Below are positions 237 to 21,200 of a DNA stretch of 64,000 nt, one piece after another. Position numbers and translations under genes: made by a program. Within the stretch, counting starts at the first letter, position 1, and every line of letters starts with the position of its first letter. The stretch comes from Heteronotia binoei (lineage: Eukaryota), in assembly GCF_032191835.1 (NCBI RefSeq), contig NC_083236.1:27466001-27530000 (forward strand), in the 5' to 3' direction. Below the pieces are notes generated by a model. That model was not told the DNA's origin, did no database searches, and was given only the letters and a program-made list of their open reading frames with translations.

Positions 237-3200
237 GTAAACTTCTCCTTAGGAAACACATGGAATGTTGAAGAATGCAGGATGCAGTGAAAAAAGACCA
301 TATTCCCCCCTCACTTTTAAATATTGATATTTTTATTGTTGTGACCTAGATGGCCCAGTTTTGCTTTATCTCATCAGATTTCACTAGCTTAAGCAGGTTT
401 GGCCCTAGTTAGCACTTGGATGGGAGACCGCTAATGAAGTTCAGAGTTGGTACTCGGAGGCAAACTGCTGCTGTTCATTTCTTGCCTCGAAAACCCAATG
501 AAGGGTTGTCATAAGTTGGTTGTGACTTGTCAGCTCTTTTCATCAGTTTTGCTATACATCCTTCTCCTGGAGCTTACAGTAGGCCCTGTACTAAGAGCCC
601 TGTAAGCTCATGAAGGATTGGCTACATCAGGGGTGTGCGACCTAATTTGCAAAGGAGATCCTGCTACAAAAAAAGCCCTGGTGACTAGGGTTGCCAAGAC
701 CAACTCAAGAAATATCTGGGGACTTTGAGGGTGGAACCAGGAGTCAGGTTGTGACAAGCACAATTGAGCTCTGAAGGGAGTTCTGGCAATTCCATTGGCT
801 TTTAAATGCCTTTCCTCCATTTGGAAATAATGAAGAATAGAGGCACCTTCTTTTGAGGCTCATAGGATTGGATCGCTTGGTCCACTTGTTTTGAAACTTG
901 AGGGGGGTGTTTTGAGGAGAGGGACCAGATGTTATGCTGAAAATTTGGTGCCTCTACCTCAAAAAACAGCCCCCCCAGAGCCCCAGATACATACAGATCA
1001 ATTCTCCATTATACCCTATGGGAATCAGTCTCCATAGGGTATAATGGAGTGCCCAGCAGACATTTCCCTCCTCCCACCCCACTTTCTGATAACCCTGAAG
1101 GACCTCCAAACTGGGGGATCCCCCGCCCCCAACTGGGGATTGGCAACCCTATCTACCTCACAAGGTGATTGTTGTGGAGAGAGGAAGGAAAGGTGATTGG
1201 AAGGTGCTTTGAAACTCCTTAGGGTGGAGAAAAGTGGGTTATAAAAACCAACTCTTCTTTGTTTCACTATGATTATTTCTCTCTCTCTCTCTCTCTTAAA
1301 CCTCCCCCCCCCCCCAAGCTAATTTTCTACGTTCAGGGAAGATTATTTTGCCTGACAACTTCTCCAACATGGAAGCTCTGGAAGCTGAAGCTGAAGCATT
1401 GGGAATCCCTGAGCTTATGGAAGCAATGAAGATCTATAGGAGTCAACCAGGTGCAATTCTTTTTACATTTTCAGTGTAAACCACCTTTCCAAGTAAAGAA
1501 GGAACCTCTTTGGGCCACGCTACATGATACATCTAATATGCTGAGTCATGGGGGTATGACTGGACTCACAGTCAGACACAAATTGGGGAGAACTCCCCTA
1601 AAAACTGCTCAGTCACTTGGCCTTGCAAAAGAGCACTGTGAGAGGAAAAGAAGCTTCCAGTCTCCATCCCACTCCACTTAACCAGTGGAAAAATGCAGTG
1701 TGATTCAAGCTCAAGTCTTCCCTGATCAGAATTCTTTGTTGTTTGTTGTTGCCTTTGTCTGTTTGTTGCCATCCATGCCTTTGTCTTCCAGAGGCCCACC
1801 CAGAGGGAACTCCCCGTTCGCAAGGCTCTGTGAAAAGCACAATACAAAAGCAGCAGAAAGCAGCTAGCCTCCCCTTGTATCCAATGGTGCTTGGTCTCTT
1901 AGTCAAATATCCTGATTCAGCTTTGGGACAGCTCCATGTGGAGAACACCCTGGATGGGAACAAGCTCTACATATCAGGAAACGGAGTTCTCTTTCAACAT
2001 GTCATGTATGTCTTTATTTGCAAGTTAGGTTGCACTGATTTTTAGAAAGAGTATTCTTTTTATATTAGTCCATCCTTCCTTTCCCTCTCAGATGCTGGTA
2101 GGATGCTGTAATGAGCAAAACCATGGAATGTGATCCTTACTAAATTTGACTGAAGAACCTAGAAGAAAATGAAATAAATAAAATGTCAGACTCAGCACAA
2201 ACATATCCTCCCTAGGCTGTCCTATTCTTTCAGCAAATATAGAGTCCCTTTCAATGTTCCTCTTGATTTTTTTCCTCCTACTGAGCAGAGCAGTTCACAG
2301 CCTGAGCAGAACATAACTGCTCAGGGCTTTTTTTGTAGGAAAAAGCCCAGCAGGAACTCATTTGCATATTAGGCTACACCCCCTGATGTCACAATTGTTT
2401 CACACAGGGCTTTAAAAGTCCAGCAGGAACTACGTAATTTGCACATTAGGTTGCTGCCACCCCGACTCCAAGCCAGCTGGAACTGCATTCCTGTGCGTTC
2501 CTGCTCAAGAAAAAAGCCCTGTAACTGCTATAATCTTAAAATGGACATTGGGCAGTGCAAGGTCCTGCATGGCTCCAAATTGCTGCTGAGCAGGGGCTTC
2601 CTGTGTTAATTAGTGGCTGCTCACTTGCACAGCAAGAGCCCCATGCCGCAGAGTGTTAAAGCTGCAGTACTGTGGTCCTAAGCTCTGCTCATGATCCCCA
2701 GTGGAAGCTGGGTTTTCAGATAGCTGGCTTGAGGTTGACTCAGCCTTCCATCCTTCCAAGGTCAGTAAAATGAGTACCCAGCTTGCTGGGGGGAAAGTGT
2801 AGATGACTGGGGAAGGCAATGGCAAACCACCCCGTCAGGGCCATCTTAACAGCATTATGGGCCCCAGGCAAAGCAATGTACTGGGCCCCTACGACCACTA
2901 CTCATAGGAATAAAAACGTAAATGGTCGATAAAATTAAATACTGTATATATTTATTTTATTGGCACTTCCAACAAAATCGGTGTTGAAACATTAAAAACA
3001 TTCTGCATAGCAACAACTAATCAACATGATAAACATTTGAACAATACACAAGGCTTGAAAAACACAATAATACTCAGTAAGCCATACAGATTAGATGTCA
3101 CAGTATGAAATTACTACGAATTTCTTATTATAAAAAGCATTTGTGGCATTTCTTAGCAGAGAATTGCTTTATTATTGGCTTGAAGTAAGTGGTCTTCAGG

Positions 3201-6200
3201 ATGTCATTTTCCATGCACATGAGTGAAAGCCAGTTCAAATGATGCTGCCCCATTGTGCTATGAAGCTGATTTTTTATAAGTTTCCGTCTTGAAAAAGAAC
3301 ATTCTCCTATACTGTTAGTCACCATCATGCACATGAACATTCTGAGTGCAATTTCAACATTCAGGAATACAGATTTCAAATTGTCAGAAATTATTTTTCT
3401 GTACAATGCAGGGAGAGTCTAGTATTTAGTCCCACATCAGAATCTTTGTATAGGTCTACAAGACGACATTCAGCATTTTCTCAACTTGCACAAATAAAAA
3501 GCTTATCCATTCATATATTCACAAACTATCAATACCTGGTTATTAGTACTGCATCATACACAGATTAGAATGGAGCCCCTATGCTCGTGGGTCCCATGGG
3601 CAGGTGCCCATCAGGCCCATGCGTTAAGACAGCCCTGCACCCAGTAAAAAGTCTGCTGCAAAAACGTTGTGAAAGCAACGTCACCCCAGAGTCAGAAAGG
3701 ACTGGTGCTTGCACAGGGGACCTTTCCTTTCCACTTGCACAGCTTAGAGGAAATACTGGGTCCCTTTTGCTACTTCTCAGCTTCTGATGGTCAGAACGGG
3801 CTTCTGCCAAGTCATGCAGTAGCAGGGGCTGACCTGGGAACTTTAATAAGGTTGCCTGTCCTTGCCTCATTGTGGGACCTTGCCTACTGCTGTGCCAGTG
3901 GATTTGCTTCTTATTTCCTAGTTCTTCTTCACAGTTTCTATGCATTGTGTTGAAGGACTCTGTGCCTATGTACAGCTTCAGTTTGGAAGCTTCTTGATCT
4001 AGCTTTAGGCACAAAAATTCTTTAGCACATCCAGGCAAAGAGAATAACAGAACGATCATTAACTTAAAAGAAAAGGAAGATAAGAACAACAGAAAAGTGA
4101 CTAACAGTGCCATCCAAAGCAGAGTGAAGCCCTTCCAAACCCATCGATACTCTGAGCATTGTGCTGTAAGTGATTTATCAAGCAGATGATCATGGGGAAT
4201 AAAAAAGGCAAGTGAGCTAGGTGGGTTGATAGGAACAGAAACTTGATTGAAAAAGATCTAGTAATAGGAGCAAAAAGACAAGCTATTGAGAAAGAACTAA
4301 AAGAACCTTTAAAGATAAAGGTGAGAGAAATAGGATGCTAGCTAGATATGGAAAGAGGATTGGAAGAAGTTTCTGCAGCATAGGAGAATAAAAGGGAGAA
4401 TAGTTAGAGTAAGAGATGTTAGAAAAGAAGGTAGAAGAGTGTGAAATGTACAAGTTGACTTGGCATTCATTTGCTGGTGCAGCTTTTCTAAGGATCAGGA
4501 ATTATGTCCAAACAGAACAGTTTTTCACATTAAATAAAATCCAGACATGCTTTATAGGAGTGGCACCTCAGCCTTGTGAAACTTCAAGTGTCGCATGAAT
4601 GGAAAAGTATCAGCAGCAACCAAATTTATTTATTCCCTACCTTTCTTCCCAATGGAGACCCCAAAAGGGCTTACATAATTCTCATCTCCTCCCTTTTATT
4701 CTGACCGGGAGGTAGGTTAGGTTGAACTTGAGGATGTGTGATGGGCCCAACTTCACCTGACAATCTGCCATGGCATGAGATGGGATTCAAACATGGGTAA
4801 CCAAGGTCTTAATGCAACACTGTAATCACTACATCACCCTGATTCTCAAGCATAAGAGAGGGTACTTCTAGTAAAAACATCAGGGGACAGCCTCAGCCCC
4901 TATGCCATTGTTAGCCCTTCAGAGGAACTAGTTAGCCACTGTGTGAGACCAAAGTCTGGACTAGATGGACCACTGGTCTGATCTAGCAGGACTCTTCTTA
5001 GAAACAGTCCCTGTATAGCTTAGACAGTAGGAAAGGGTGCTTTCAGAAGGAATATGCAATAAATATATGAAATAATTGATCTCTTTAAAATTCTTTTCTT
5101 TGTGTACAAAGGAATTGGTTAGGCACTTCCAAGCTCCCTCTGACCCGGAGTATGTCTGAGCTTCTTGAACTCTGCTCCTATTTGGATCAAATGGACATCA
5201 CTTATCAGCCCATGAAGGATGCTTTGAAAACATATCTAAAACAAAAGACACCTAGAGATACCATGGGAAAATGTAAGCCAGTTGCTCTGAGCCTTTTCTC
5301 TTGACTTTTAACTGTATGAGCTTTGAGCCATGACTCATGAACAATATTGAATAGTGGCTGCCAGCTTCAACAAAAGGGTCGAGTAAGGACCTGTCTGTTT
5401 GAATCAGGGGCTGTTACAAACTACTGTTTGTTCCCAACTGGTGTGTCAGTACAAATGTTTCTGATGACTGTGTAAGAAATACCATTGCAATTCTAGATAA
5501 TAGATTATGTTCAGAATGTTACAATTATAGCTTTAGAGTCACTTACTGCAGAATTCCACAAGAATATGGAAAGTGCTTATGGGACTACAGGGAGACACAT
5601 TCTTCTTCTTCTACATTCTTGGCATTTAATAAACCAGCAGCTACTGAACTCCATTGGGAGGCATAGTATAAACTTTTAATTTAAAATGGTTGATTTTCCA
5701 CTCTGAAGTATTTGCAAGAATATACCGCTGCACTTACAAACGTACTCCCACCCCAAACAAAAGTGCATCTCTTAAAGTGAATTTGGTCATTTATGGGAGA
5801 AGAAAAGAACTTCCTTAAACTTATATATTTCTCCATAATATCCAAAGTGAAGCTTTGTCATGCTTTCCCCATTGTCAGATGTACAAGCTCTAGGATAGCT
5901 TCCACATCTAATTGGAGAAGAGACTTGCTCTGACCTGGATGGACTAGGCTAGTCCAATTTTATCAGATCTTGGAAGCTAAGCAAGGTTGACCCTGGTTAG
6001 TACTTGCATGGGACACTGTTGAGAAAGTCCAGGGTCTAGAGCAATGGCAAACCCCCTCTGCTGTCCTAAAAACCCCAAGGGGCTACCATAAGACAACTGC
6101 TTCTTGATGACACTTTTCACCACCACCAAGAAACACAGAAAACAACAACAACAGGATTTCAAGTTATTAAGAGCTGCCATTAAGAATACATGGTGAATGT

Positions 6201-12200: not shown

Positions 12201-15200
12201 TGGAATTATCTGGTTGAATGCCTTATGAATCTGGAAATACTGTAACCATGGGTTAATAATGTGGTGTTTACTTTCCAGTTGTTCTTTCGTACCTAGTTTA
12301 CCTTTAATTATTAAACCACTAATTCTAAAAAAGTTTTTATCTCTCCAATTTTTATATGCCACTAGATCTCTCCCCGGTGTAAACCAGTTTTGCCCTAGAA
12401 AAGCCATCATTGGTGATGTTGGAGGTGCAAGTTGACCTCTCACTTTATCCCATAGATCTTCTTTGTGGTCTCTGTGCAGTCCCACACATGGGTCTTGCCG
12501 CAGGCAACGGATCCATACCTTGGAGCTCCAATAGCTCGTTTACAACGTCTTTTGGCGCGCTTTCCTCCCGCCCTGGGGAGCAGGCAGCGACTGCGCATGC
12601 CTGGAGCGGGGGGAGAGCGCCAATTCCACTCAGTTTCTTCCCTTCCGCCGCCCGGACAACACCTACCTCGTTGCGTTCCTCCTCTGGCTCGTCTCTTGGT
12701 ATCGTACTATCTCTCCTTTTTCTTACTACTTACTCTCTCCTTCGTCCTAATACTCTATATATTAAAAAAAAAAAAAGTAGAACCCGCTTTTGCGCTTTTG
12801 CTCTCTTTCTACTTCCCCCCCCCCAACCCCTTCTCTCCCTTCCCTCTCTTCCCCTGTCCGGAACGGATGGAAGGGAAAATCACCTTTAAAAGGTGTAGGC
12901 AGTGTGCTTCTAAAATTCCGTCCTCTGACGGTCACTCGCTCTGCCTATTTTGCTTGGGGGAATCCCACAGAGTTGACACCTGCCACCACTGCGCTTGCTT
13001 CGGTAAGCAGGCGCACAAAAACAGAGCAGCTCGTCTTCGTAGTTTCCTCATGGAGTCTTCTCTCCGCGCGATGTCTACCTCAGATCCGCCGCCTCCCCCA
13101 TTAAGAGTGGGAGATTCGGCAGCTTCGGCCCTTCCTATCGCACCTAGGAAGCATAAGTCCGACAAAAAGGCTTCTAAGCACTCTGAGGGGCATAAGACGC
13201 CTAAAAAGGCCCGTCACGGCGAATCGAGCCTGTCGAAGCCGCACCGCTCGAGTCCGGAAACTTGCAGCCCGACCACTTCGGCGCCTAAGAAGCACCACGA
13301 CCCGTCGGCTTCTAACTCCGCCATCGCGCCCGTGCGTGAGCGCCGCGATCCGTCGGCTTCCAGCACTTCCGCCCTGGCTACGGCTGCACAATCGGCTTCG
13401 ACAGCTGCGCAATCGGCTTCTGCGCAGTCGGCTCCTTCCGTGATTTCTCACTCGAATCCGATCTTACCAATCGAACTCTCGGCTCCTTCCGATGTCATCT
13501 CGGAAATGCCCCGCCTCACTCAGCCTTCTATTGAAGTGATCCCGATTGGCTCTAGATCGCCCTCGGTACACAGTCTCCCTCCTATCGATATTCTCGAGTC
13601 CGAGCCTCCACCTTTTCGACCCGAATCCTTCCTCGACATTACAACACCAGTGCTTAAGGATATTACAACTCCATTGCTTAAGGAGTCTTCTACCCAGGTC
13701 TCGTCTCATCGACTCCGATCTCGATCCCCGCGGCTCCGCTCTCGCTCGCGGTCTCCGCTCCGTCCAAGATCTCCGATCCGAGATCGCCTCAACTCTCCGC
13801 ATCGAGATGACCACCGTGACCGTCGCCGCGATCGCTCACGGTCCCGGTATGGTGACTACCATCGTGGCTATCGACGGGACCGTTCTCCATCCATCTGTCT
13901 CCCGGTTGCTATGATGATTATCACCATCACTACTACTCTCCTCGAGAAGAAGCAACCCCTCGCACCCGAGATGATGCAGCAGCTCCTCGGACCCGAGACG
14001 ACTTCGGCTCCCATACTGTACCGGGATCCCACAACGTTCTGCAGCCTCCTGTCCTTACTCGGAACCGAGATTCTCCCAGGACAGCATCCGCATCGGTTTC
14101 CAAACCGCCTATTTCACCGCTAAAGCGTCCTCGGGACCCTTCACCTGTCGAGCCCAAGTCACCTCAACACCCCGTCTCGACTTCAGATAGAGACACCTCT
14201 GACCACTCTGACTCCGAGGAGGCTCCAGCCTCGCCTTCATCGGACCAACCTCCTAGGCTCTCACCATCCGATAGCTCTAAGGCTTACCTTAATTTGATCA
14301 CAACTATGGCTTCCGCACTGAACATCCCCATGTCCTCTGATTCACCTAAGGTCTCGGATGTGGTACATGACCTGGTTCGCACAGACTTCCCGGATAGCTC
14401 TACGCTTCCTATGCTTCCTGTACACTTTGAAGGTCTTCGGGAGGCCTGGGAGAAGCCGGCCTCGATCCCTACTCTTTCCCGACGCCTGGATTCTCTTTAT
14501 AGGGTGCACGCAGCTGACTGCAAATTCCTCGCCTCCCACCCGGCACCCAACTCTATTGTTGTCCATTCCGCCACCAAGAACAAACAATCTCGCCACCCCG
14601 TTCCTCCGGACCGCGAGGGCCGAAAATTGGACACTCTGGCTAAGAAAATCTATAGCTTCTCTTCAACCAACTCTAAGTTGAACAATTACAGCCTATTTTG
14701 CGGCTTACTCCTTCAACTTGGCAAACCAGATCACCCCACACATCACATCCATGCCTGACTCATCTCAAAAAGCTGTCTCGGCTCTCGTCTCTGAGCTCTC
14801 CCGTGTCTCAAAACAACAAATAAATTCTATCCGCCATGCGGTTTCCTGTTCCTCCCGAGTCTTCGCAACTTCGGTGGCCCTACGTTGCCACGCCTGGCTG
14901 CGCTCAACGAACTTACAGCCAGACATCAAGCAGCGTATAGAAGACCTCCCTTTCGATGGTCTGGGGCTATTCCATGCGTCCACGGACGAGGTCCTCGCAT
15001 CGGTCGATGACGGCCGCAAGAGAGCGAAACGTCTTGGGGTCACACAACCAACCTCGCTGCCCTCTAATAGGCAAAGACCGTGGAAGCCATCCTTTCAGCG
15101 CCGTCAACGGTCTCCTAAGTCCCAGGATTTCTGGAAAAGGAAACCTCTCCCAAAGCAGCCCTTTCATCAGAGGCCACGGGCTCAACCTTCTAAGAAGCAA

Positions 15201-18200
15201 TCCCAGACAGGCAAGCAGTCTCTTTGACTCTCCCAACAGGCATACCAGACTATCTCCCTTTTACCCAAGCTGGAGTTCCATCACCACCGACTCTTGGGTT
15301 CTTACCATCGTGCGTCTAGGTTACGCAATAGAGTTCGTTTCGCCACCACACCACCACCACTTCATAGCTACCCCTCCATCTGCACTCCTCCATCAGGAAA
15401 TTCTGGACTTGCTCCAGAAGAATGCCATAGAACCCGTTCCTCCCCAACATCGAGGGACGGGATTCTACTCAAGATACTTCCTGGTCCCCAAAAGGGATGG
15501 AGGAAAGCGCCCAATCCTAGATCTTCGGAAGCTAAACAAGTTCATCGAATACAGGAAGTTCAGAATGATCTCCCTACAGGCCATCCTGCCTCTTATTCCC
15601 AGGAATTCCTGGATGGCTTCCCTAGATCTTCAGGACGCTTACTTCCATGTGACAATCCGACCTCATCATCGGAAGTATCTGTGATTCGCCATGGGACAAG
15701 ACCACTTCCAGTACGTATCCCTGCCCTTTGGCCTCTCCACCGCGCCAAGGGTATTCACCAAGTGTATGGCGGTGGTGGCAGCGGCCCTCAGGCTTCGAGA
15801 CATCACAGTCTTCCCATATATTGACGACTGGCTTCTCATAGCACCGACTCAACGTCGTTTGCAGAGCAATATCAACACTACGCTCTCTCTTCTCAATTCC
15901 CTGGGGCTTTGTGTGAACACATCCAAATCCCATCTCGAGCCTACTCAGGACATCAAGTTTATAGGGGCTCTCCTCCGCACTTCTCTCCACCGTGCTTTCC
16001 TCCCTGAGGATCGAGCAATCACTATCATCACCTTAGCCAGGTCAATTCAACGACAGCCTTGCCAGTCTGCGTTCACAATCCAACGCTTGCTGGGCCTCAT
16101 GGCCGCCACGACTTCCGTCATCCACTTTGCCAAGCTACGGATGCGACTACTACAGCTTTGGTTTGTAAGAGCCTACCATCCTCAGTTGCAACCGCAGAGT
16201 GTCTTACGGTTCCCCAGAGAGCACTTTCATCCCTCACGTGGTGGACTGTACCCAGCAATCTCCTCGCGGGCATGCCGTTTCTACCGACGCCTCCAGTGGC
16301 TGTTGTGACAACGGACGCCTCAAAGTGGGGATGGGGAGCCCACTTAGAGGACAAGACCGTCAGAGGCCTTTGGACTCCCTCCGAGAGGGCCATGCACATA
16401 AACTGCTTAGAACTGATTGCTGTGCACAGGGCCCTCTTATCATTTCTCCCGCTGATCAACGGAAGGCATGTTCAGATTTCAACGGACAACATGGCAACCG
16501 TCTATTATATCAACAAGCAGGGAGGAACCAGGTCTCTCCGGCTTTGCCGTATAGCCGTTTTGCTTTGGGAATGGTGTCTGAAGCACAACATTTACTTGAC
16601 CGCCGTTCACCTCCCAGGTGTCGACAATGTTCTGGCCGACTCTCTGAGCAGGTTTCGCTTGGACGACCACGAGTGGTCCCTCAATCCGACCTACCTTCAA
16701 CGCATTTTCAGATGTTTCGGAACACCCATGGTGGATGCCTTTGCTTCCAGGGACAATGCCAAATGCCCACGCTATTTTTCGAGAAGGGGGAACGACGCCT
16801 TCCTTCACAGCTGGACGGGCCCTCTTCACTACATCTTCCCACCAACCCCTCTACTGACTCGGGTACTGATGAAGATCGCACGAGACGGCACGGACTGCAT
16901 CCTGGTAGCCCCTTGGTGGCCACGGCAACTGTGGTTCACGAGACTTCTCCAGTTATCTCATCACACCTACCGTCGCCTCCCTCTTGTGAGCGACCTTCTG
17001 TCCCAAGCCAATGGTCAGATACTGCACCACAATCCTCAGGTACTGGCCTTAACGGCCTGGAGAATTCGACCTCCTGCCTCTCCGCAGAGGTAGCCCACAT
17101 TATTCTCAACGCGAGGAAGCCCTCCACGAGGCTTTCGTACCAACGTAAATGGAAGCGCTTCTGTTCATTCGCGACTGCTAACCATATACCTCCAGAGTCA
17201 GTACCTCTCAATATGATCCTAGAGTATTTACTTTCTCTACAGAAATCAGGACTCTGTTACTCATCCCTGAAAGTTCATCTGTCTGCCATCTCTGCGTTCC
17301 ACAATCCGGTAGACGGTAAAACAGTTTTTTCTCATGCCTTGTCCAAGTCTTTTCTCAAGGGCATGTTGCACCTCAATCCACCCGTTAAACCCCTTGTTCC
17401 AACTTGGAGTTTATCCCTAGTTCTTTCCTCGCTTATGAAAGCACCATTTGAACCTATGGCTACCATAGACCTCAACCTTCTTTCCTGGAAGACAGCATTG
17501 CTGATTGCCCTTACCTCTGGCAAATGGGCAAGTGACTTATGCGCCTTCCGCCACGATCCTCCTTACACCATTTTCCACAAGGAAAAAGTTGTTCTGAGAC
17601 CAGACCCTGCATTCCTTCCTAAAGTTGTCTCCCAGTTCCACTTATCGACTTCAACCTCTCTACCAACCTTTTTCCCCAATCCAACCGACCACGGACAACG
17701 GGCCTTGCATTCTTTGGATGCAAGAAGGGCTTTATCTTTCTACCTTGATCGTACACGGCTCTTCCGTAAGGACCCTAATCTGTTTGTGGCATACGGAAAC
17801 CCTTGCAAGGGACACAAAATTTCTACCCAGAGACTATCTAAATGGGTAGTTAGTGCCATTACGCTGTGCTACGAACTGGCTAAACAGCCTCTGCCCGAAG
17901 GCCTTAAGGCTCACTCTACTAGAGCGGTCTCGACGTCTTCGGCTTTCCTGCACGGCGTCTCCCTAGAGGACATCTGTGCTGCTGCATCGTGGTCCTCTCC
18001 TTCCACGTTCGTCTCCCATTATGCGTTGGACGTTCGTGCGAGACGTGACACCTCCTTCGGCCAAGCGGTCCTCAGATCCATCTTTCACTGAGATGAGGGG
18101 TGAGTGCAGCCGCTTATATTCCTATGTCGTACAATCTTTGTTGTTGGCCATGTGACTAACTTCTTTCTTTTCCAGCACCCTCCTCCAGGACACTTAGCTG

Positions 18201-21200
18201 GCTAGTCACCCATGTGTGGGACTGCACAGAGACCACGAAGAAGATAAACAGGTTGCTTACCTGTAACTGATGATCTTCGAGTGGTCATCTGTGCAGTCAC
18301 ACACGCCCACCCAGCCTTCCCCGCTGCTGGCCTTTGGTACTTCTTGCTTAAACTTTTCTAGTCTCACTGCCAGTGGCGGCTGGAAGAAACTGAGTGGAAT
18401 TGGCGCTCTCCCCCCGCTCCAGGCATGCGCAGTCGCTGCCTGCTCCCCAGGGCGGGAGGAAAGCGCGCCAAAAGACGTTATAAACGAGCTATTGGAGCTC
18501 CGAGGTATGGATCCGTTGCCTGCGGCAAGACCCATGTGTGTGACTGCACAGATGACCACTCGAAGATCATCAGTTACAGGTAAGCAACCTGTTTTTTCAG
18601 CGTGAACTCTAAGTACGGATTGCGAAACTCCTGCCACTTTCTATCTTTGCTATCATTCCACAAGGCTTCATGTAGGCTAGATTATGCCAGAGAAGCTTGC
18701 TCTATAAATTCCCATGAAGTTTACTGAGATGTGCTAGCATAGGTGACTATATGCCTTAAATTAGATGCCAAATAGTAATTATAAATATCAGGAAGGTCTA
18801 GGCCTCCATTTTTAGAGGGTTTTGCTAAGTTGTCTGGAAATTCTTGCTCCCCCCCCCCCTGCCCAGATAAATGAATTGGTCATTCTTTGCCATTTTTTAA
18901 AATATCCGGTAATGATATTGGTATATTTTGAAAAAGAAATAATAATTTTCGAAATAAAAACGTTTTTATCAGGTCCACTCTCTCAGTTAACGAGAATGAG
19001 AATTTTTCCCAAGCCAGAATGCACGACCGTCCTTCTTCCAGTATAGGGCTAAAGTTATAACCAAATAGGTCTTTCAACCTATTAGGAACTATTATTCCCA
19101 GATGTCTCCATTTGTCCTTTACCCATTTAAAGGGAAAGGACTTAGAAATGTTTTCTCTAGAATTATATCCCCCATTTTCCAAATATATGGAATATAATTC
19201 TGATTTGTTGTAGTTAATCACAAAACCAGAACATAGACTAAACTCATCTATTTCCCTTATCACCTTTTGAAGTGAGGAGACTGGATTTGTTAAATAAAAC
19301 ACTCATCGTCAGCAAAGAAACTAGCTGTAAAGGTATTTTTGTGTATTTCTATTTCCTGAATTTGGTTGTTTGATCTAATTGCAAATGATAGCGGTTCTAA
19401 TAATAAATTTTTAATAACATTTTTAATAATAACGTTTTATTTATAACCCGCCCTCCCCACCGAGGCAGGCTCAGGGCGGCTAACAACATATCAATACAAT
19501 AAATTATACAATAGGTATTAAAAACAGCATTTAACCTTAAAAACATTCCAGTTTAAAATTACACATTAATGATAACGCAAATAGATAAGGAGACAGGGGA
19601 CAACCCTGTCTAGTGCCTCTGTGTAGGGGGAAATCCTTTGAATTATAACCATTAATACTGATTCTTGCTGTCGGTTTTTGGTATATTGCTGCCAACGACT
19701 GTGGAAATTTAGGGCCGAAATTCACATTTTCCAATAGGGTTTGCAAATATATTGGTTCCACCCTATCAAACGCCTTGTCTGCGTCTAAAGACAGTATGAC
19801 AGATGGTATGCTCTGGTGCCTACAATGAGTTATGAGATTTAAAGTTTTCCTTACATTGTCTGCCAGGGAGCGACCCGGAATAAATCCTGTTTGTTCCGTA
19901 TGTACGTACCGATCAATTACTGCACCCAATCTATTAGCTAGAAGCGTTGCAAATATTTTAAAGTCATGATTGAATACAGAAATTGGTAGGTATGATGCTG
20001 GGTACTCTTTATCTTTCCCTGGCTTAGGGAGAACTATCATTCTAGCCTCCACCCATGTTGGAGGAATTCTACCCATGTCCATTACGTGATTACATAAATC
20101 CACTAGTGGTTGTGTTAGGATGTCTTTGAATTTTTTGTAAAATTTTATAGGATATCCGTCCCTTCCTGATGCTTTATTATTCTTAATTGATGATAACGTT
20201 TTCTCTATCTCTGTTACTGTAACTGGTTTATTTAGTAATTCTTGATGGTCGTTCGATAATTTCGTTTTATAATTTATTGTGTCCTTCAGTTTAGTGTTAG
20301 TAGAGGAATATAGATGTCTATAATAGTCCACAAATACCTCTACTAAACCTTTTGTGGAGTTTTCAGAAAAGTTCTGACGGTTTTTAATAGAGAATATTAA
20401 ATTGCTAGATTTCTTCTTCTGTGTTCTATATTTCAGTAGCTTTAAAAATTTGGTGTTTTAGTAATGTATCTCTGTTGTATAAAGCATCTTTTTGGATAGT
20501 GTTAGTGTCCAAAAGTTTCAGTTTAGATCTAGCCATATTTAATTTCTGTAGGGTACGTTTACCTCCATACTTCATGTGCTTTTTTTCTAACCTTCGAATT
20601 TCCAAAATAATATCTGATTTTTTTTTTGTCCTTTTCTTTCTTGCAGGCTGAAGCTAAAGAAATAAGACTACCTCTTAAAGTAGCTTTAAAGGCCTCCCAT
20701 ACCTTTTCCTGCAATACCCTGCAATCTTTATTAAATAAAAAATATTCTTTAATGTCTTTTTCAATTTACGTGCAAATAGATTCTTTACTCAGTAATATTT
20801 TATTTAAAGTCCATGAAGGTTTTTCTCCCAAGTCAGGAGATAAAATAAAAAAACCTGTTATCCATGAATGGTCTGATATGGTCCTGGAACCGATTTCTAC
20901 AGAACCCATATTATTAATAAATGATGCTGAAGCTATAATGAAGTCAATTCTAGTGTATGTATCATGGACTGGTGAATTGTATGTATACTCACGAACCCCT
21001 GGGTTCTGCGCCCTCCAGACATCGGTTAGATTAAATGCTGTTAGAAGTTTTCCTAGATCTGAATCTGGAGCTGATTTGCTTTCCTTACATTTTCTAAAGG
21101 ATGTATCAAGAGAAAAGTTAGCAATACTATTTAAATCACAACCAATAATAAGTTCCCCCCTTTGAAATGATTGAAGCTCTAGCAATGTTGATTTTAAAAA

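Follow-up and report, generated by a model that had tools for sequence, protein, structure and literature searches.

How does a retrotransposon make a recombinase and a polymerase when the two are encoded largely on the same stretch of DNA? The question is raised by 64,000 nucleotides (nt) of the genome of Heteronotia binoei (NCBI RefSeq assembly GCF_032191835.1, contig NC_083236.1, positions 27,466,001 to 27,530,000 of the forward strand), hereafter the window, from whose first letter all coordinates are counted. At 12456-18594, on the plus strand, the window carries a decayed DIRS1-like retrotransposon of the 'long ORF overlap' type, ~6.1 kb in length, whose first open reading frame (ORF1, putatively gag) ends in a TGA at which two further frames start (CTT TGA C, 15222-15228): that of the tyrosine recombinase (YR), which is in frame with gag (frame 0), and that of pol, shifted by +1. 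We suggest that in a widespread vertebrate clade of such elements the gag stop, of the general form YYY-UGA-C (Y, pyrimidine), may be a three-way decoding point on one mRNA, at which termination would give gag, a +1 shift gag-pol, and readthrough a fusion of gag, a connector and the recombinase, the connector being ~620 codons in the -1 frame of pol and selected only to stay free of stops. We assign this composite reading a probability of roughly 0.35, and its parts are graded separately below.

The same frame as that of the gag TGA at 15225-15227 (position mod 3 = 0) is open at 15228-15821, at 15825-16004 and from 16008 onward, with only two stops (TGA 15822-15824 and TGA 16005-16007) before a frame break; past the break the YR frame occupies 16169-18091 and contains a 630-amino acid (aa) ORF at 16199..18091. 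This map agrees with the one drawn in an initial annotation of the locus, which had also read both internal stops as candidates for CpG decay at synonymous positions of pol; each does use the third base of a pol codon (15822 within Y-I-D-D, 16005 at P-E) and lies in a TpG. Two further lesions it had listed are both present, namely a nonsense codon in the reverse transcriptase (RT) at 15682-15684 and the replacement of the first catalytic Arg of the recombinase by Trp, while its '1-nt deletion near 16200' holds as a net -1 frame break that is now placed between 16205 and 16230 (a ~90%-alike contig from an RNA library has four extra letters just behind 16205). Given the RT nonsense codon, the -1 break, the two YR-frame stops and the Arg to Trp change, the window copy is dead.

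Even in this dead copy the YR frame is strongly depleted of stops. Because it is -1 relative to pol, a stop in it arises only where a pol codon with T at its third position precedes a codon that begins with GA, AA or AG. Synonymous-codon shuffles of pol predict 9.9 and 10.8 stops in its two pieces, against 2 and 0 observed (P about 3e-4 and <3e-4, respectively), so that the claim of openness beyond chance is borne out; the other alternative frame is undepleted (14 and 16 observed, 13.4 and 11.8 expected). At the level of single codons, T stands at the pol third position in 2/105 cases before GA, AA or AG codons versus 38/190 before other codons starting with A or G (Fisher 2e-6), and the non-overlapped ORFs of the element show no avoidance of this kind (23/88, 7/34 and 16/58). 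These results confirm that the openness of the YR frame comes from neither chance nor composition, and we regard dual coding of a known type, under selection for openness, as close to certain.

The type is indeed known. In DIRS1-like elements the second ORF encodes the YR and the third pol, with considerable overlap possible and the YR catalytic domain in the non-overlapping 3' end; a 'long ORF overlap' was described in half of 28 annotated elements, including those of lizard, pufferfish and frog (Piednoel et al. 2011, PMC3266345). Similarly, ORF II (YR) of Dictyostelium DIRS-1 has been drawn overlapping ORF III (pol) (PMC3950715). In view of these descriptions the 950-codon dual-coding region is a family trait and is not new. 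At the same time, the DIRS literature that we searched holds nothing on the translation of the YR ORF, on the frame it has with respect to gag or on the context of the stop.

Relatives of the frame are numerous. A protein search with the 640-aa recombinase-frame ORF of the window found predicted proteins of 942-1116 aa in tortoise, fishes and toad, aligned over 92-97% of the ORF. An exhaustive search with the corresponding Pogona ORF returned 8,048 cluster representatives at E<=1e-3, 797 of them at E<=1e-30; among its best 150 matches, about 36 are 910-1125 aa long and aligned nearly end to end, the near-full-length ones including 'uncharacterized proteins' of Pogona, Xenopus laevis and Bufo. 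By the coordinates of the Bufo gene, the gag stop and the YR AUG lie in one frame, 69 nt apart. A scan of viral contigs gave no relatives of the element.

The DNA of natural copies was then mapped frame by frame. Nine have an intact YR frame, and in eight of these it covers all of pol: L026 (Pogona vitticeps), L030 (Xenopus laevis), L023 (the carp Cirrhinus mrigala), L031 (a read assembly) and the metagenome contigs L001, L002, L004 and L006. Others (L003, L005, L008, L020, L024, L025, L028 and probably L029) were too decayed or rearranged to be scored. In the eight, the YR frame runs for 961-1191 codons without a stop, which upholds the view that the active element had a ~955-codon YR frame laid over RT, RNase H and putative methyltransferase; over 632-822 pol codons it has 0 stops where 13-33 are expected, and every shuffle gave at least 4. 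These counts are to be read with the caveat that the nine elements are related by descent and are not independent.

The ninth, of Anolis sagrei (L027), serves as an internal control. Over the first 253 pol codons past the gag stop its YR frame is closed, with 21 stops versus 20.6 expected, and over the remaining 417 it is open, with 0 stops versus 12.9 expected; stop avoidance therefore tracks the open frame and not the codon usage of pol. Viewed on the DNA (L027:3936-4698), this element has a CTT-TGA-C gag stop, a +1 pol and 22 YR-frame stops in the first 760 nt. The YR frame begins inside RT, has 760 codons and represents an intermediate length of overlap.

What, then, do the ~620 overprinted codons (15228-17116) encode? 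R, S, P and G together make up ~40% of their residues, with few aromatic or large hydrophobic ones; the stretch is basic and probably disordered. The overprinted pieces have no Pfam match, and a PDB sequence search with the 640-aa ORF gave nothing. Several comparisons indicate that the amino-acid sequence drifts. Between L004 and L008 (69% nucleotide identity), divergence at pol third positions in the overlap (0.514) equals third-position divergence in the YR-only domain (0.536), and the overprinted frame is only 23.5% identical to its Pogona counterpart where pol on the same DNA is 46-48% identical. Further to that, when the window is set against the ~90%-alike contigs, 12/13 of the differences listed in the overlap affect third positions of pol codons, equivalent to YR first positions; these contigs came from three metatranscriptomic runs, an origin in RNA libraries that does not prove them to be transcripts. 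Judged by these patterns of substitution, selection has kept the frame open and left the encoded sequence unconstrained. The reduced synonymous variation of RT inside the overlap that was anticipated at the outset is not seen in L004 versus L008, and the same two values led us to reject the overprinted segment as a constrained domain. The catalytic domain of the ~955-codon YR ORF is its non-overlapped 3' third. The simplest reason for more than 600 codons to be open and yet unconstrained is that ribosomes must traverse them.

The next question is where ribosomes would enter such a frame. In the window, as in seven intact relatives (L002, L004, L006, L023, L026, L030 and L031), gag and YR share one frame, a single gag TGA stands between them, and YR is open from the very next codon. 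The base after this stop is C in the window and in 6/7 of the linked relatives. No start codon is held in common: the first AUG of the YR frame is found at codon 15, 18, 23, 24, 42, 153 or 184, a position that is not conserved, and in the window there is none for more than 340 codons. The AUG-less open stretches of Pogona (183 codons) and L006 (152 codons) would be expected to contain ~6 and ~5 stops and contain none. Among all nine elements in which pol is +1 to gag, the window included, the gag stop is TGA in 9/9 and is followed by C, a leaky context, in 8/9 (P 2.5e-4 versus the first-base frequency of gag codons). It had also been considered that the gag TGA of the window might itself derive from a CpG; with the codon conserved across nine elements, that origin was rejected.

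Entry at the gag stop is the most likely arrangement, since only openness is selected, the frame opens exactly there and no AUG is conserved; on this comparative pattern we think it probable that ribosomes enter the YR frame at or within a few codons of the stop. The simplest route would be readthrough of the gag UGA, which the pattern supports but does not prove, and we give true readthrough of UGA-C into YR about an even chance. Ribosomes would occasionally read through the weak UGA-C, the product would be a gag-linker-recombinase fusion, and the fusion could carry small amounts of recombinase into gag particles. A gag-YR readthrough fusion had been put forward in the initial annotation and stands as a reasonable hypothesis, with the same layout in 7/8 relatives; the layout is not universal, L001 and Anolis being different. 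Readthrough for YR has not been proposed in the DIRS literature searched.

The same stop may also be the way into pol, which is +1 relative to gag in the nine elements. The first AUG of pol lies well inside the conserved region in 6/9, and conserved pol sequence starts no more than ~20 codons past the gag stop. Upstream of the stop, the open stretch of the pol frame does not exceed the length obtained in synonymous shuffles of gag (P 0.26-1.0) and is not conserved between the window and Pogona; in the comparison of the window with the ~90%-alike contigs over 15017-15161, 21/23 of the differences listed affect third positions of gag codons, equivalent to second positions in pol. Coding of pol upstream of the gag stop was rejected on account of this chance length, the lack of window-Pogona conservation and the changes at pol second positions.

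Immediately 5' of the UGA, the window, Pogona and Anolis have CTT, while carp, L031 and L006 have TCC, L002 has TTT, Xenopus has TTC and only L004 has CAG, so that YYY-TGA-C is found in 8/9 elements; for a pyrimidine-only codon in 8/9, the naive P is 3e-6 versus gag codon usage, or 5e-4 when lineages are counted conservatively. Natural antizyme +1 sites are UCC-UGA and UUU-UGA, and CUU-UGA, the RF2 site, gives +1 shifting equal to that of UCC-UGA in mammalian cells (Ivanov and Atkins 2007, PMC1874602); UUC-UGA, as in Xenopus, is not among the sites quoted in that paper. Were ribosomes to shift by +1 at YYY-UGA-C, decoding of pol would begin with the GAC overlapping the stop, and gag-pol would result. 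As a route to pol, judged from the stop contexts and the position of conserved pol sequence, we hold this shift tentatively, at slightly less than even odds.

YR lies at -1 relative to pol in all elements examined. A gag-YR-pol layout with gag and YR in frame is not universal, as L001, L020 and Anolis differ. L001 has gag in frame with pol, separated by TAG-G, and its YR frame shares 75 nt with the end of gag; L020 and L013 show yet other relations between the gag, pol and YR frames. Some observations on single elements belong here. In L001 (2014-2202) the gag-TAG-G is followed by 120 nt of strongly structured sequence (z -3.05), as in readthrough of the murine leukaemia virus (MLV) type, and its YR frame, of 1191 codons, contains the run C-AAA-AAG, a possible -1 slip site, 15 nt ahead of the stop. 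The distant element L013 (2060-4894) has a 944-codon YR frame that opens ~170 nt past the ORF1 stop, with four stops between and the first AUG at codon 454; entry from pol is likely there. In Varanus L029 (5373-6914), a gag-TGA is in frame with pol, the YR ORF has only 450 codons, and the -1 frame of pol has 11 stops versus 26 expected, a deficit that an earlier long overlap could have left behind in a copy since rearranged. Finally, Pogona L026 has an in-frame TGA inside ORF1 (L026:3915-3917), with 564 codons before it and 177 after, which is either a lesion of this copy or a second in-frame stop.

A number of points weigh against the gag stop as a three-way decoding point. No stimulatory RNA structure was found downstream (z -1.0 to +0.8 for the 122 nt around and after the stop in six elements, pseudoknots not being modelled). 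Five of the eight intact-YR elements have an AUG 15-42 codons past the stop, which is where the NCBI gene models start, and this makes separate initiation or re-initiation possible. Anolis retains CTT-TGA-C though its YR frame is closed there, so the stop motif may serve pol only, and the C at +4 could reflect a conserved Asp codon (GAC) in pol. As regards pol itself, the open stretch of its frame ahead of the stop has an early AUG in the three reptile elements, the window among them, at non-homologous positions. The other relative frames used by L001 and L020 mean that the in-frame gag-YR link is no family rule. More generally, the case for recoding is comparative throughout, and it draws on nine elements of shared descent and on RNA-library contigs that are unproven as transcripts.

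Among the rival explanations, the one that deserves most attention is that the recombinase ORF is translated on its own, from an AUG or near-cognate codon near the gag stop, by termination-reinitiation, from an internal ribosome entry site, or from a spliced or subgenomic mRNA, the sharing of the gag frame being incidental. The early AUGs just mentioned (Xenopus, L031, L002, L004 and carp) fit this account, as does the failure to find a downstream readthrough structure; the two downstream ORFs occupy two of the three frames, and chance alone would put one of them in the gag frame 2/3 of the time; pyrimidine-rich tracts and CAG around the stop could be splice acceptors. Independent initiation leaves unexplained, however, why the frame is open where there is no AUG for 183 codons (Pogona), 152 codons (L006) or >340 codons (window), and why AUG positions are not conserved. 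As for splicing, a 499-nt RNA-library contig is unspliced across the junction, and the only nearby joint, from 15233 to 15387, is without GT..AG ends. We therefore consider separate translation unlikely, though still a serious competitor to entry by recoding at the gag stop.

A different route, conceivable as a general one that would include the short-overlap elements, leads into YR by a -1 shift out of pol soon after pol has been entered. The constant -1 relation of YR to pol speaks for it, and so does the opening of YR inside or at the end of pol in Anolis, in L013 and in the probably rearranged Varanus copy, at places that could be reached only by a shift from pol or by internal initiation. 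For elements of the window type it would demand two successive shifts, +1 and then -1, where simple readthrough suffices, and we judge it improbable. Least credible of all, and very nearly dismissed, is the notion that the open frame is a by-product of composition and codon usage and is untranslated upstream of the catalytic domain. The plus strand is C-rich (GC skew -0.19 to -0.26), and synonymous changes in pol can by themselves remove stops from the YR frame. Nevertheless, shuffles that keep both protein and codon usage still predict 10-33 stops, and the avoidance of T is specific to positions before GA, AA or AG, being absent from the other ORFs of the element and from the closed-YR part of Anolis pol.

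Programmed readthrough is known from gag-UAG-pol of MLV and from the UGA-C of alphaviruses. The arrangement proposed here resembles these in having a single stop of leaky type (UGA-C) between a capsid-like ORF and a long in-frame ORF without a conserved initiator. It is unlike the MLV case in that no downstream structure was detected, the product would be gag-recombinase instead of gag-pol, and ~620 of its codons are overprinted on pol; L001, with its TAG-G, strong downstream structure and in-frame pol, is nearer to the MLV type. With regard to pol, the likeness is to antizyme (UCC-UGA, UUU-UGA) and to bacterial RF2 (CUU-UGA-C), the downstream frame being +1 and the UGA preceded by CUU, UCC, UUU or UUC in 8/9 elements and then followed by C; unlike in antizyme, no 5' element or 3' pseudoknot of the antizyme kind was found (pseudoknots were not modelled). 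A review (PMC5009743) makes no mention of DIRS, and a +1 shift at the stop for gag-pol of a vertebrate retrotransposon is not documented there. Overprinted viral genes offer a last comparison: here, too, two long frames share one DNA and the overprinted product is biased in composition and probably disordered, but the overprinted YR frame is without measurable amino-acid constraint and only avoids stops, which would make it a translated connector and not a second domain.

The element itself was delimited by a pair of inverted terminal repeats (ITRs), an internal complementary region (ICR), a contrast in GC content (0.51-0.53 versus ~0.41 in the flanks) and Pfam domains, and all of its features lie on the plus strand. 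The left terminus with the left ITR (12456-12641) was recognized by its complementarity to the right ITR and the ICR, and the right ITR with a right extension (18382-18594) likewise by complementarity; the ITRs proper, 12471-12641 and 18382-18552, are 171 nt long and 98% complementary. The ICR (18208-18304) matches both termini, its left half (18208-18245) being complementary to 12456-12493 and its right half (18246-18304) 100% complementary to 18536-18594. Over the ICR and right ITR (18200-18594), summed contig depth in all three RNA libraries is 1,000-4,400, compared with tens to hundreds over the coding part, and the terminal and ICR sequence is present in many more records than the body of the element.

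ORF1 (12885-15227) was traced by tblastn with Pogona (L026) ORF1, which aligns at 12885-13082 in frame 3, at 14261-14704 in frame 2 and at 14724-15047 in frame 3; with the alignment split in this way between two frames, at least two frame shifts must have broken the gag-like gene. Its last open stretch is 14682-15224, ended by the TGA. ORF1 has no Pfam match, and the name gag is given by position and from the literature. At 13291-13420 and 13635-13682 it contains short repeats, tandem or direct, that measure 20-24 nt and are 86-90% alike.

The pol gene (15226-17093, stop TAG at 17091) was assigned by Pfam and by alignment to Pogona pol, with which its identity is 46-48% over 15205-16221 and 16230-17066. 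It comprises RT (RVT_1, E 1.5e-13, in the frame opening at 14941) and RNase H (RT_RNaseH, E 6.6e-8, within 16008-17090), both of Ty3/gypsy-related type, followed by a putative Dam-like methyltransferase; the Pfam Dam match is weak (E 3.9e-4, 20.6 bits, under the gathering score of 28.1), an equally weak one is found in L001, and the Dam stretch of the window can be aligned to Pogona pol. The non-overlapped catalytic region of the recombinase (17117-18091, stop TGA at 18089) was identified by Phage_int_SAM_1 (22.6 bits at a cut-off of 22.3, residues 317-378 of the ORF at 16169-18088) and by an alignment in which AHSTR and the Tyr are conserved; the element thus has a tyrosine recombinase in place of a DDE integrase. 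Right behind the recombinase stop, the ~90%-alike contigs of two RNA libraries omit 76-80 nt (18091 to 18168 or 18172). The omitted piece ends in GA..TC or GA..TT, not GT..AG, and is more readily seen as an indel difference between copies than as an intron removed by splicing.

In all these respects the element is like the long-overlap DIRS1 types, namely Dictyostelium DIRS-1, AcDIRS2, TnDIRS1a and XtDIRS2/3 (PMC3266345) and the DIRS-like families of Xenopus (PMC9210276). Common to them are ITRs and an ICR, a gag-like ORF1, a pol with RT, RNase H and (in the window copy putative) methyltransferase, a length of ~6 kb, and a YR ORF beginning ahead of pol or close to its start, overlapping it and carrying the catalytic domain in the non-overlapping 3' end. 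We see no structural difference between them and the element in the window, which is merely decayed.

By itself, then, the window is ordinary, being one dead copy of a known type of element. What is new is the comparative evidence, which supports the gag stop as the entry point of the YR frame, and probably also of pol, by recoding; gag-stop recoding for DIRS is new to the literature we searched, which gives no account of how these elements obtain their recombinase and polymerase from three ORFs that overlap. The pattern consists of one conserved UGA in a shift-prone and leaky context, two downstream ORFs without conserved starts, and a connector of >600 codons that is open and free to vary, and it narrows this gap in DIRS translation to a few testable mechanisms. 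If true, the three-way reading of the gag stop would place two recoding events at a single stop codon, which is unusual, and would be an extreme example of a frame preserved only for the passage of ribosomes, and it would account for hundreds of ~950-aa 'uncharacterized proteins' annotated in the genomes of reptiles, amphibians and fishes.

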